Shown here piece after piece: positions 52,973 to 57,528 of a stretch of DNA of 64,000 nt. The notes below the pieces were generated by a model. That model saw only the letters and a list, made by a program, of their open reading frames with translations. It was not told where the DNA came from and ran no database searches. Where the stretch lies: positions 1,624,362 through 1,688,361 of the forward strand of contig NW_003314278.1 of assembly GCF_000143415.4 (NCBI RefSeq), written 5' to 3'. Both the position numbers and the translations under genes were made by a program. Origin of the DNA: Selaginella moellendorffii (taxonomy: Eukaryota; Plantae; Lycopodiophyta). How positions within the stretch are numbered: position 1 is the first letter of the stretch; each line of letters begins with the position of its first letter.

Positions 52973-54660
52973 ATGCGCACGCGTTTCAAGGGGCTGGTCA
53001 AGAGACTGCTCTTGAGATCGTCGAGAAAGGACCAGATCGTTGGCTCGTTCAGGGACAGTGGTCTTCTCAGGCTGGCCTCGTCCTCAACGGGGAACAACGC
53101 GAGGATGATCCTCGTCCAATCCCAGGAGCTTGGAGACATGGAGGAGAACGACGCGGTATCGGATCAACCTCTGGAGGACAATTCCTTGGATAGTTTCCAC
53201 TCGTGCAAGACTTCCATCTCCTCGAGCGATCACCTCCCGATTCATGGTCATCCAGCGGCAGTAGAAGATTCAACAGCATCCTTCAATCTCCGGATTTATG
53301 CCGTGACTTGGAACATGAATGGCAAGGTATGAATATCGAATCTCTCAACGTTCCTTTTTGTTCTTACACTGTGACTCCCAGATCCCACACGACTCTCTTC
53401 CCAAGCTTCTAGAAAACGGGAGAGGTGACTACGATTTATACGTGATTGGGATCCAAGAATCGCCAGTTTCTTCGCTGAGGCGTGTTCTTCATCCCATTCT
53501 CGGCAAACAGTACAGGTATGCTTTCTCGAGTCTTTCTTTCGTAGGTAGTGTGATCTTTCCCATTTCTAGCCATAGCGTAGCAATGTTTTCGGTTCTTTAG
53601 ATTTGTGTGACACATTTTCGTGAAATGTCAACTGAATTCTCGAGAGATGGGATTTTGACTTGGTGGCTCTTTTCTGCACAGCTTTGTGGCAAAGTCAGTG
53701 ATGGGCTCGCTGCAGCTCTACGTGTTCGGGAAATGTTGGCTGCAACATCACATATCCGGTAAGCTTTGCTGACTTTTTCCGCGAATGAATCTATTTTTCA
53801 TTCTTTTTTCCTGAACTCACTGGAGAGTTTGTTTATTTTTCTTGCTCCCCACGGGCAAACAGCCAAGAAAGTTGATAAAGTTCGATTCAAGGGCTTTGGT
53901 GGAGTTGTAGGAAGGCAGAAAGGCGCTGTAGCCGCGTCCTTTTGTATCGGCAATTCATCCTTCCTCTTCATTGCGTCCCACTTTGCCGGTAAGAAAGAAG
54001 AACTTGCTTCCAAAAACTGTTTCTAAACACGAAAACACAGCTCACGAGAAGAAGGTGAACGAGAGGCACGTTCAGTACTCGCGAACCCGGCAAAAGATCT
54101 TTTCGCGGCCGAGCACCTCACAAGAACAGCCCGGCAGCAACTTCATGGACGAGTCCGACGTTGTGGTCTGGCTCGGAGATCTAAACTATAGAATCGAAGG
54201 CAGCAGAGGTCTCGTCAAATCGTTCGTGAAACAAAACCTTGAGAAGGTACGATACAAAATCTTTCCTTTTTGGTTTTCATGGTTTCTTCCTTGTGGATCA
54301 CAGCTGCTATGGAAACGCGATCAGCTCTTCAACGCAGTGGACAAAGGCGAGGTCTTTAATGGATTCGTGGAAGGACCTCTCGAGTTTAAGCCAACTTACA
54401 AGTACGATGTTGGAACGGACGACTATGATACGAGTGGCAAGGTTTGTGAATATTTCTGCTATGGATATTTGCAGCTCACAGTTTCGTGTGTTGTCTACGA
54501 TCAGGAAAGGGTTCCATCCTGGACAGATAGAATTCTTCTCAAGATTAGAGATGAGAGCTCTATCAGCCTGGATGTTGTCAACTATCAGTCAATCGATTCT
54601 TTGCGGAGTTCCGATCACAGGCCTGTCAAGGCACTTCTTCGCGTCACCAATCTCAGCTAG
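52973..54660 (+). CDS. Inositol polyphosphate 5-phosphatase (5PTase11-like), multi-exon
   Basis: VTWNMNG, WLGDLNYRI, FKPTYKY, PSWTDRIL, SDHRPV. Confidence 0.92.
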
Positions 54661-54991
54661 AGCAAGTCCCCGACTCTCCAAAGTTTTGACACATACTTGT
54701 GACATAAAAAGGTTGTAATTTTCTATACGTCCATATCTCTCCCATGCTGAAGATCATGGGAGGTGGATTTTAATGAGATTTCACTTTCAACTTTAGTCGT
54801 GAGGGGATACAAATCGTTCTTGAAGGCATGAATGTCCGAGCTCGTGACTCTCGTGGGAAGAAAAAGCTTTGTTTTTTTTCCCTCTGTTTGTGTAAGGGAT
54901 GGAAGCCCAGACAGAGCTCACATTTCTCGCGTGGGCATACGAAGCTCTAGTATAAATCCAGTGTGGATAACTTGGATCATTCATTGGAGGC

Positions 54992-56597
54992 ATGGAATCG
55001 TCCTGTGGAGTACTTCTCCTTGTACTCATCGCTGCCGCGGCGAAAGCTTTCGCTGCTGCTCCAGCGTCCATCGACTGGCGAGCCAGGGGTGCCGTGACGC
55101 CAGTGAAATCCCTTGGAAACAACTGCTCAGGTGAGCTTCTTACAAGAGTTTCTCATGGATTTGATTCATGGGTCGAGTTCCAGATGGGAGCTGGGCATTT
55201 GCAACCGCTGCTGCCGTGGAAGGAGTCCACTACATTGCGACTGGACAGCTCGTGGACCTCTCGGCCCAGCAGCTCCTCGACTGTGACACGGCCTATGGGA
55301 ACTCAGGTTGTAGCAAAGGCTTCCCCCAGAACAGCTTCCCCTATCTCGAGGAGGGTGCCGGCTTGCACAAGGAGGCCGACTATCCTTTCACTGGAAGCTC
55401 TGGCTCTTGCAAGAAGAAGGTTGCCCTCGATCGAAAGCTATCCATGATCTCGATGATGGTATCTTATTTTGTAGGATGGTCTCGTGGTCACTATCGACGG
55501 CTTTGACAACCTCTGGGGTTCCAGCAGCGACGCCGAGATGGTCGAGCGCGTAGCCAAGCAGCCAGTGACAGCTCTAGTGGACGGAGACGCTGACGCTTTC
55601 AAGAAGTACAAGAGTGTAAGTTCCTACTTTCGATTCATCCAAAGAATGTGAGTCGAGAACTTGTTCTTCGTTCTTGCAGGGCATTTTCAAGGGACCTTGC
55701 TCGGAGGACAAGCCCCGGCTGGCGGTCCTCATCGTCGGCTATGGCTCGGAAAAGGGCGAGGACTACTGGATCATCAAGAACTCCTGGGGGACTTCGTGGG
55801 GCGAGAATGGCTACATGAGGATCCAGCGCGGCAACCACGGTCTCCCCTATGGGCGATGCGCGATTAACTCGTTCGTCTACTACCCGACCAAAGCTCCCTC
55901 CACCACCGGCTCTACCGACGGCCTCGTCGGCTGGTGGGAAATGAACGAGAGAAGCGGCAGCGTCGCCAAGGATTCCTCGTCCAGCAACGCCGCGGGAACC
56001 ATCTCCGGCGCGTCGTGGAGCTCGAGTAGCGGCCTCACTTTCAGGGGCTCGGGGAGAGTTTTCTGCGGTGGCGGGGCATCGCTGTGCGGCAAGACGCCAT
56101 TCACGCTCGTTGCATGGGTGAAGATCGCCGCGTCTTTCAGATCCAAAGGCGTGATCATGCAGCAGCGAGGCCCCGGGAACTGGAACGGGAAGGTGACAAC
56201 CGATGGCTATAATGGCGAGTACCAGCTCTACGTCCAGGGTGGCAAGCCGAGCTTCTGGGTGTACGGCGATTTCGCCGACCAGTTCCGTTTCTCGGCCTCG
56301 GCGTCCGTGAATGACGATCGGTGGCACCAGGTCGTGGCGGTGAGGCAGGGAAACCAGGGTCTTCTCTACGTGGATGGAGAGCTCTCCGGATCGGCCAGCG
56401 GCGAAGCGAAGAACTTGGTGTCCAATCTCCCGGTTTACCTTGGGTGTGACTGCCGGGACAACGTTGACTTCTTCACTGGATCTCTCTCGGGCTTGAGGAT
56501 TTATAACCGAGCTCTCTCGGCTGACGAGATCAAGCAGCTCAAGGCAAGCAGTGCACCGAGTGCTAGCGATACCACGTTGCTCCACTCAACTGGTTGA
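54992..56597 (+). CDS. Secreted papain-fold (C1A) pseudoprotease fused to a LamG/ConA-like domain, 477 aa; exons 54992-55130, 55184-55419, 55475-55615, 55680-56597
   Basis: [38 protein letters not shown], then [39 protein letters not shown]. Confidence 0.9.
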
Positions 56598-56763
56598 GAA
56601 CACTCTTTTTTGCCTTTCAATCAAAAAGTTGACCGCCTTTTGAAGTACAATAACCTTTAGTTGACAAAGTTTATCTTGAAATTTCTTAGTTCCATTTCAT
56701 TAGATTCAAATCTAAATAAAAATTAAATGCAGATATGAAGATCACACACAATTAGTTTACATT

Positions 56764-57528
56764 TCAAAACATGGGTGATCTTATTGGGATACCTTTCCTT
56801 GCCCGCTTTCTAAATCCTTGAAGAGCAGGAGCTTGACGCTTGTCATGCTCGACAGTATTACAAGGGGCACTAAACACATGTACTGCCTCGTCCATTATCC
56901 TCGCACGAACTTGCTCAATGGAGCTTTGCTCTGGCTGCTTTCGTTTCCTGTTGGATGGAGCCTTTTTCGCCTTGGGAGCCCTAGGTCGATCCTTTGGCTG
57001 GACCTTAACGACCCGGGCTTGATGATCGTTGAGCTCACTTCTCGGTGGGGCGACCTCGCCAAAAGGTGGCGGAATGTTCTTCTCCTGACCCTGATCGACT
57101 TGGGCTTGCTGATGCGCGACGAACCCTTCACACTGGAGCTTGCAGTAGAGCGAGCAGTAGAGAGCTCCGTGCAGCACCCTCTTGCAGTGGCGGCATAGTA
57201 CCGAGTTTTGCACCTCTATTCCTCGGGGCCTGGCGTGGAGATAAAAGATTGGGCCTCCGTTGATGATAAACGTCTCCAGCCCCGACGTATCGATGAGGCG
57301 CTCCGCCTCATACGCCTTGAGTGCAGTAAGGCGGCCTGAGATTACGATCTGCAAAGCGTTTCGGGGATCGCAAGTCCGGTGATCCTTTTTGCATTCTTGA
57401 CACAGGGACACTAAGCACTGCTTGCAGAAGAAGCTCTTCTTGCGTTTCCCGGATGTGCAGTTGGCGTGGAGTTCACACACTGTGAAGAAGTCCGTCACGT
57501 TCAACAGAGCTTGCAACCACGACGCCAT
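56764..57528 (-). CDS. PLATZ zinc-binding transcription factor, intronless
   Basis: WLQALL..FFTVCELH..FCKQC..LCQEC..H, ETFIING, CRHCKRVL..YCSLYCK, RKRARKGIPIRSP. Confidence 0.9.
   Translation of the reverse strand: MASWLQALLNVTDFFTVCELHANCTSGKRKKSFFCKQCLVSLCQECKKDHRTCDPRNALQIVISGRLTALKAYEAERLIDTSGLETFIINGGPIFYLHARPRGIEVQNSVLCRHCKRVLHGALYCSLYCKLQCEGFVAHQQAQVDQGQEKNIPPPFGEVAPPRSELNDHQARVVKVQPKDRPRAPKAKKAPSNRKRKQPEQSSIEQVRARIMDEAVHVFSAPCNTVEHDKRQAPALQGFRKRARKGIPIRSPMF

Follow-up and report, generated by a model that had tools for sequence, protein, structure and literature searches.

A transcribed, probably non-catalytic papain homolog joined to a bacterial-type LamG domain in the lycophyte Selaginella moellendorffii

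Introduction

Papain-fold proteins that have lost catalysis are already known, both in plants (SPE31 and the pseudopeptidases of wild Hordeum) and beyond them (silicatein). Here we describe a further case, a gene of the lycophyte Selaginella moellendorffii in which a dead papain domain continues into a LamG domain. It occupies positions 54992-56597 of the forward strand in a window of 64,000 nucleotides, the whole stretch of DNA that was analysed (contig NW_003314278.1, positions 1,624,362 to 1,688,361).

SPE31 of Pachyrhizus erosus is a papain fold without the catalytic cysteine, and soybean P34 is a case related to it. Both SPE31 and P34 have a propeptide in synthesis, and position 25 is Gly in them, not Ser. 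SERA5 of Plasmodium is a pseudoprotease whose papain fold, with Cys25 replaced by Ser, has a non-proteolytic role; it has large flanking regions, is intracellular to the parasite vacuole and has no LamG domain. The same Cys25-to-Ser exchange and a non-proteolytic role are found in the sponge protein silicatein alpha (PDB 6zq3). In wild Hordeum, C1A pseudopeptidases with Cys-to-Ser and other catalytic substitutions are expressed and have been discussed as possible binding or decoy proteins (PMC13520124).

The active enzymes closest to the gene described here are the RD21/XBCP3-type granulin papain-like cysteine proteases (PLCPs; MEROPS C1A). Its papain domain is 45-49% identical to theirs, and the best canonical matches carry an I29 inhibitor prodomain and a granulin domain. 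We found no paper on the fusion gene in the literature on Selaginella PLCPs, on LamG domains and horizontal gene transfer in Selaginella, or on plant papain pseudoproteases.

Our reading, which we hold with good confidence, is that this is a transcribed nuclear gene for a secreted two-module non-protease that arose by stepwise loss and by shuffling of a LamG domain, and that acts, we infer, by binding.

Results

An exhaustive search of GT/GC..AG splice sites over 54992-56597 gave a single sensible outcome, an open 4-exon model of 477 codons. The predicted 477-aa product is identical, letter for letter, to RefSeq XP_002971529.2 of S. moellendorffii (P0001, named 'cysteine proteinase 7'), and it is made up of a signal peptide, then a papain domain in its mature form and lacking I29, a linker of 8 aa and LamG_3. 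Exon 1 (54992-55130) encodes the putative signal peptide (about residues 1-21, ending A-F-A), which leads into the mature papain N-terminus APASIDWR, and contains the codon of Leu41 (55112-55114). Intron 1 (55131-55183; 53 nt, GT..AG, phase 1) lies immediately 5' of the former nucleophile, so placed that exon 2 (55184-55419) holds Ser49 (AGC, 55189-55191) at the Cys25 position, together with the central helix and the L-domain. Intron 2 (55420-55474; 55 nt, GT..AG, phase 0), exon 3 with the middle part of the papain domain (55475-55615) and intron 3 (55616-55679; 64 nt, GT..AG, phase 0) follow. Exon 4 opens with the papain R-domain (55680-55895), where Leu186 (CTG, 55719-55721) stands at the His159 position and Asn206 (55779-55781) is the retained Asn175. 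The exon then passes through a Ser/Thr-rich linker of 8 aa (residues 245-252; 55896-55919), modelled with a low predicted local distance difference test score (pLDDT), into a LamG_3/ConA-like jelly-roll (about residues 253-466; 55920-56561), and ends with a C-terminal tail and the stop codon (56562-56597). At the position of this linker the paralogs instead have a Pro-rich one, followed by a granulin-type tail rich in Cys.

The identity of both modules is clear. Pfam places Peptidase_C1 (PF00112, cut-off 20.7 bits) on exon 2 with 79 bits (7e-22) and on the start of exon 4 with 77.6 bits (1.9e-21, exon residues 1-70), and Laminin_G_3 (PF13385, cut-off 27.6 bits) on the remainder of exon 4 with 97.8 bits (8.5e-28). 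The papain part matches ficin at E 2e-57. When modelled alone from 46 sequences it reached a pLDDT of 89 and a predicted template-modelling score (pTM) of 0.87, and the model superposes on actinidin, ervatamin and ginger protease with template-modelling (TM) scores of 0.92-0.96 and a root-mean-square deviation of ~1.4 A.

Alignment to ficin and 45 other C1 domains shows that Gln19, Cys25 and His159 are replaced by Leu41, Ser49 and Leu186, respectively. Where C1A enzymes have the Cys25-His159 dyad the protein thus has Ser49 and Leu186, and RNA matches the genome at both codons. The loop preceding Ser49 is longer by two residues, and Asn175 and Trp177 are retained. All six disulfide cysteines are also kept, in the pairs 45/89, 80/122 and 179/232, which correspond to papain 22-63, 56-95 and 153-200 and fall in columns that are invariant or nearly so. 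Among the C1 domains fetched in the analysis, 179 of 196 have Q-C-H-N at the catalytic positions and every exception is an S. moellendorffii protein; therefore, the catalytic substitutions are not due to chance. Judged by its sequence, the protein cannot act as a papain-type protease, since neither nucleophile nor general base nor oxyanion Gln is left.

The prodomain is missing as well. Pfam found no Inhibitor_I29 match on exon 1 or elsewhere on the gene, and tblastn searches with I29 prodomains and granulin tails returned no relic of either near the gene (all matches at E > 1). In place of the RD21/XBCP3-type tail of Pro-rich linker and granulin, the C-terminal part is LamG_3. The protein would be secreted, as suggested by a hydrophobic N-terminal core that ends A-F-A and by the secretion of its relatives.

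The gene is transcribed as modelled. In sixteen runs labelled RNA, 60-80% of the words sampled from the stretch are present, and RNA contigs from four runs, belonging to four studies, were placed on 54600-57000. All three introns are spliced out exactly: the joint across intron 1 (55127>55181, cut +3) appears in runs X1, X2 and X5, and those across introns 2 and 3 in 4/4 runs. Single contigs extend from exon 1 to 56269, deep within the LamG domain, and beyond a heterozygous bubble other contigs reach 56733; from 55680 the RNA is unbroken, so the papain C-terminus passes into LamG without an intron. The contigs start at 54940-54975 and none joins an upstream exon. In the three runs with full coverage the word depth exceeds that of both neighbour genes, depth being a poor measure of expression; the fourth run lacks the 5' end. 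Every difference between RNA and genome falls at a position where the two haplotypes of the genome disagree, and both alleles are transcribed. We considered RNA editing that restores Cys or His and rejected it, since all RNA differences are known allelic sites.

A preliminary description of this locus, made from the sequence alone, had proposed a signal peptide running directly into the mature papain fold, three active-site replacements, an intact frame with three introns and the structural cysteines, and a last exon entering LamG without an intron. The alignments, Pfam and tblastn searches and RNA contigs described above bear out all four points. In addition, no transcript ended ahead of the LamG part, neither Cys nor His was restored, the gene proved neither silent nor neutral, and we did not find the architecture to be common and already characterised in plants.

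On the sequences of its paralogs, the fusion gene is not a one-off: it belongs to a clade of dead papains, most of them without a prodomain, that is so far known only from S. moellendorffii. Paralogs without I29 comprise the P0003 and P0004 clusters and P0437 (RefSeq 'zingipain-1/2', 'mexicain'), with Arg/Ser/Leu (R/S/L) or other non-catalytic residues at the catalytic positions. In most of them the C-terminal part is a Pro-rich linker with a short Cys-rich tail, both of which P0004, P0124 and P0437 keep. P0437 ('mexicain', 331 aa) is more divergent; it is prodomain-less, has the Pro-rich and Cys-rich tail and, read by eye without alignment, apparently has Thr at the Cys25 position. Since P0437 combines prodomain loss with this Thr, the dead clade appears to be larger than the R/S/L family.

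One further paralog, P0174 (L003:10001-11495, scaffold GL377565.1), keeps signal peptide, I29 and granulin and has Ile/Ser/Thr at Gln19/Cys25/His159. This RD21-like protein has also lost the Cys153-Cys200 disulfide. In the tree the dead papains are monophyletic (98/98); within them the sister of the prodomain-less group is P0174 (98/92), and that of the fusion is the R/S/L family. Introns 1-3 of P0174 agree in position and phase with the three introns of the fusion gene. In P0174 a first exon of 457 nt encodes the signal peptide, the prodomain and the start of the mature part as far as the same phase-1 break ahead of the G-x-S-W motif, and LamG sits where the last exon of the paralogs runs on into the Pro-rich/granulin tail.

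That P0174 is dead although I29 and granulin persist in it, that it stands as sister of the prodomain-less group and that it shares the three introns together suggest that catalysis was lost before the prodomain. This departs from the preliminary description, which had taken the two losses to be coordinated. Because signal, prodomain and mature start lie together in exon 1 of P0174, the prodomain was probably removed by a deletion within that exon. We also observed that in the R/S/L paralogs P0004, P0124 and P0130 an Asn-Gly-Ser sequon is completed by the Cys25-to-Ser change itself, its Ser being the former nucleophile. A glycan at a sequon of the former active site would fill the old cleft.

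In the full-length AlphaFold model the LamG half is all-beta, with pLDDT > 90 over residues 250-465 save for one ten-residue block (~341-350, mean 66). Foldseek relates it to ConA-like lectin domains at E ~1e-10, the closest solved folds being the lectin-like domain of trypanosomal trans-sialidase and the jelly-roll at the N-terminus of the binding domains of clostridial toxins. The likeness extends no further than the generic ConA-like fold.

A database search returned 43,419 relatives of the LamG domain among 1.84 billion representatives. Besides the fusion itself, the closest were a resident S. moellendorffii family of 850-960 aa (P0249 and four paralogs, ~50%), proteins of the liverwort Calypogeia fissa (54%) and then metagenomic or Verrucomicrobial sequences such as Rubritalea (43%). 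Among the ten closest representatives whose source was looked up, the plant relatives came only from Selaginella and Calypogeia. Beyond Selaginella, this LamG subtype turned up in plants only in the C. fissa proteins P0331, P0402 and P0403, which are 51-54% identical and carry one or two LamG domains after an N-terminal region of ~317 aa without a Pfam match. A pattern scan of GTDB listed bacterial-genome matches at <=40% identity, mostly from the PVC group (Verrucomicrobiota, Planctomycetota), with one from Candidatus Achromatium (Gammaproteobacteria) and a few from other phyla; the genome of the bacterial protein P0287 was absent among the matches listed.

The resident family consists of secreted proteins with a Reprolysin-like metzincin domain with its HEXXHXXGXXH motif intact (HEAGHNWGSSH), a bacterial immunoglobulin-like domain (Big_9) and two LamG_3 domains. 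The core of the P0249 gene is a single 2533-nt exon (L004:6001-8533, scaffold GL377695.1; paralogs P0398-P0401), and P0287 has the same Reprolysin_5-Big_9-LamG_3 layout. On account of this layout and this single-exon core, the metzincin-LamG family looks like a bacterial (PVC-type) transfer into the Selaginella lineage that later expanded. In our tree, which is unrooted as to the direction and number of transfers, the two LamG domains of the resident family together form the sister group of the fusion LamG (91/85), and P0002 joins them next (82/58). These lie within a 100/99 clade that also holds the bacterial P0287, P0330 and the liverwort sequences, and Rubritalea is included in its sister clade.

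The second haplotype scaffold (L001) carries the same neighbours and the same 1606-nt gene, without an indel and with the 477-codon frame free of stops. The haplotypes differ at 31 sites, namely 6 in 172 intron bases (3.5%), 15 synonymous and 10 non-synonymous. From these two haplotypes and just 25 coding differences, the Nei-Gojobori ratio of non-synonymous to synonymous divergence (dN/dS) is 0.20 overall, 0.10 in the papain part and 0.27 in LamG (binomial p 1e-4 against neutrality). Both modules look constrained in this small sample.

As for the surroundings of the gene, a TATA-like box read from the sequence (TATAAAT, 54951-54957, forward strand) lies ~35-40 nt 5' of the ATG, and the RNA contigs of two runs begin ~20 nt downstream of it, at 54974/54975. 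The 3' untranslated region spans 56598-56733, the latter position being reached by contigs of runs X1 and X8. The upstream neighbour is an inositol-polyphosphate-phosphatase-like gene (Exo_endo_phos2; 53971-54660, forward strand) and the downstream one a PLATZ zinc-finger gene (56764-57528, reverse strand), with synteny of the two preserved on the scaffold of the second haplotype. No transposon remains were found adjoining the fusion gene.

Discussion

Considering these results, we propose the following history. The first module derives from a granulin-bearing (RD21/XBCP3-like) plant cysteine protease, with fold and three disulfides kept, and the second is a LamG_3 jelly-roll of a subtype found elsewhere mainly in PVC-group bacteria. 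An RD21-like gene would first have lost catalysis, a stage at which P0174 would still stand. An in-frame deletion within exon 1 would then have taken out the prodomain, presumably dispensable because a dead enzyme needs no inhibitor. Finally, a LamG copy would have replaced the Pro-rich/granulin tail inside the last exon, its most likely source being the resident intronless metzincin-Big_9-LamG family, which itself has the look of a bacterial transfer. LamG would thus probably be bacterial in ultimate origin and have entered the fusion gene by duplication and shuffling from that family.

The resulting protein would be an extracellular, non-catalytic binder. A partner, whether peptide or protein, would sit in the remodelled papain cleft, and LamG would bind a glycan or a protein in the wall or on a microbe, so that the whole would serve as a tether, sponge or recognition protein, not as a hydrolase. 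A selected non-enzymatic role, as first suggested in the preliminary description, is supported by the spliced RNA in four studies, by two intact and transcribed alleles and by the dN/dS of 0.20 (p 1e-4). More tentatively, and with clearly less conviction, one may picture the lycophyte chimera as an extracellular protein of a new kind, assembled from two unrelated modules and bivalent in recognition or sequestration: a peptide, inhibitor or effector would be caught in the pseudo-cleft, LamG of bacterial-transfer ancestry would anchor this complex to a glycan of the wall or of a microbe, and the papain shell would fold without a prodomain. If true, this would be a pseudoenzyme-lectin immune or wall protein without a seed-plant counterpart.

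Several observations weigh against parts of this reading. The cleft carries the substitutions Gly65 to Lys, Leu67 to Phe and Met68 to Pro, and the sole N-glycosylation sequon of the protein, Asn44-Cys-Ser (55121-55129), lies within the former active-site loop. Together with the two-residue insertion before Ser49, these changes mean that the cleft may be blocked rather than used; given Gly65 to Lys, the insertion and the sequon, inhibitor binding is not to be assumed. A decoy function of the Rcr3/Pip1 kind, in which the protein would bind protease inhibitors secreted by a pathogen and be guarded by, or compete with, active PLCPs, is possible but weakened by the same substitutions, insertion and sequon. 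The signal peptide was called by eye from the N-terminus, and the papain half has a pLDDT of ~30 in the full-length AlphaFold model, from which the packing of the two domains cannot be read. P0174 sits on a very long branch, and its sister placement could be long-branch attraction. No member of the dead clade and no close homolog with LamG was found in another species among the matches listed (word-seeded database searches, best 8000 candidates scored), and without such an ortholog long-term conservation cannot be demonstrated. Finally, the constraint between haplotypes is drawn from the few coding differences given above, and support for joining the fusion LamG to the resident family is no more than moderate. 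Two alternatives survive the approximately unbiased (AU) test, with p 0.10 for a clade of the fusion with P0002 and p 0.22 for one clade of the plant sequences.

The first of these topologies bears on the strongest competing explanation, in which a bacterium was the direct donor of the LamG segment at the 3' end of the gene, by a transfer separate from the founding of the resident family. P0002 has the single closest LamG (54% identity and 242 bits, vs ~200 bits for the resident family). It is probably bacterial, since the domain ahead of its LamG shares 69% identity with the one in a bacterial-type multidomain protein and open reading frames of the same strand lie tightly packed on its contig. 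A small insertion is common to P0001, P0002, P0330 and the resident family. The best tree, however, pairs the fusion with the resident family and leaves P0002 outside, and a donor already present within the same genome is the simpler source. We therefore regard direct transfer as unlikely, though a serious contender. In this respect the earlier suggestion of a horizontally acquired LamG part holds for its bacterial type and less so for a direct transfer into the fusion gene, for which duplication from the resident family would be the better account.

It is also improbable that the gene is a functionless relic, a transcribed dead protease gene that captured LamG by chance and has been drifting. 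Its catalysis is gone, the matches listed contain no ortholog outside S. moellendorffii, and plant C1A pseudopeptidase copies can be many and of uncertain use (PMC13520124). A drifting gene, however, fits poorly with a 477-codon frame that is intact on both haplotypes, without indel or stop, despite an intron divergence of 3.5%. The low dN/dS, the exact splicing, the word depth above both neighbours in the three fully covering runs (poor as depth is as an expression measure) and the six preserved disulfide cysteines speak against drift in the same way.

Still less probable is that the protein remains an enzyme, either with Ser49 as nucleophile and another general base, like silicatein or other Ser-substituted papain folds, or with a new non-protease activity. 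The Cys-to-Ser exchange does leave a potential nucleophile beside the retained Asn175 and Trp177, and silicatein alpha, a Cys-to-Ser papain homolog, is among the sequence matches. Against this, His159 and the oxyanion Gln19 are both Leu and the loop before Ser49 has gained two residues. Moreover, the paralogs differ among themselves at the catalytic positions (R/S/L, I/S/T and, by eye, Thr at the Cys25 position in one), a pattern that does not point to new catalytic residues under conservation. Lastly, we give almost no credence to an assembly or annotation artefact, as the 220-aa older annotation EFJ27278.1 that ended after the papain domain might suggest, or to the transfer of a whole papain-LamG gene from a bacterium, to which a Bacteroidota cluster with PF13385 and PF00112 (score 0.82, a lead only) might point, since single RNA contigs from independent studies run from exon 1 into LamG at 56269, the same gene and neighbours recur on the second haplotype scaffold, and the papain part nests among plant enzymes beside Selaginella paralogs with which it has three plant introns in common.

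A secreted, non-catalytic two-module protein thus remains our preferred reading, and it can be set beside the known systems. With the RD21/XBCP3-type PLCPs the fusion shares the three disulfides and Asn175, and its intron positions are those of the RD21-like paralog P0174. Unlike them, it has no I29, no granulin and none of Cys25, His159 and Gln19, and for this reason it is better classed as a non-peptidase homolog than as an enzyme of the RD21 family. The RefSeq name 'cysteine proteinase 7' is therefore misleading, and non-peptidase C1A homolog with a LamG domain would be the fitting class.

Among the dead papain folds, SPE31 (PDB 2b1m/2b1n) resembles the fusion in being a plant protein without the catalytic cysteine (TM 0.88 and 42% identity to our papain model); unlike the fusion, it is a single-domain seed protein without LamG. 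The wild Hordeum pseudopeptidases differ in that a whole C1A gene moved by grass-to-grass transfer, and no LamG or other added domain has been reported in them (PMC13520124). Silicatein alpha has the same Ser in the papain fold, and unlike the fusion it keeps His159 and has no LamG. The present gene bears on the role of expressed plant pseudopeptidases and on the broader question of whether the C1A fold can mature without its prodomain chaperone.

On the LamG side, the domains of the metzincin-Big_9-LamG family (P0249, P0398-P0401) and of P0287 are 47-50% identical to that of the fusion and group with it; in that family a LamG pair follows an intact metalloprotease and a bacterial immunoglobulin-like domain, whereas the fusion has a single LamG after a dead cysteine protease. 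The nearest parallel in domain content is the Bacteroidota cluster mentioned above ('LamG-like jellyroll', ESM Atlas, 76 members, ~723 aa), in which Laminin_G_3 and Peptidase_C1 occur in one protein. That cluster is bacterial and was matched by language-model features only, and the pair would have arisen there independently, because the papain part of the fusion is clearly plant-derived. As a lead, it suggests that papain and LamG are paired elsewhere in nature too.

The novelty of the case is that one plant protein unites the loss of the prodomain, the loss of catalysis and a LamG domain of probable bacterial ancestry, with intermediates kept as paralogs. The birth of a pseudoenzyme can thus be traced within one genome, from a dead protein with prodomain and granulin, through dead proteins without prodomain and with a Cys-rich tail, to a dead protein without prodomain and with LamG. 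The case also bears on whether domains of bacterial genes gained by horizontal transfer can be redeployed by shuffling in a plant genome.

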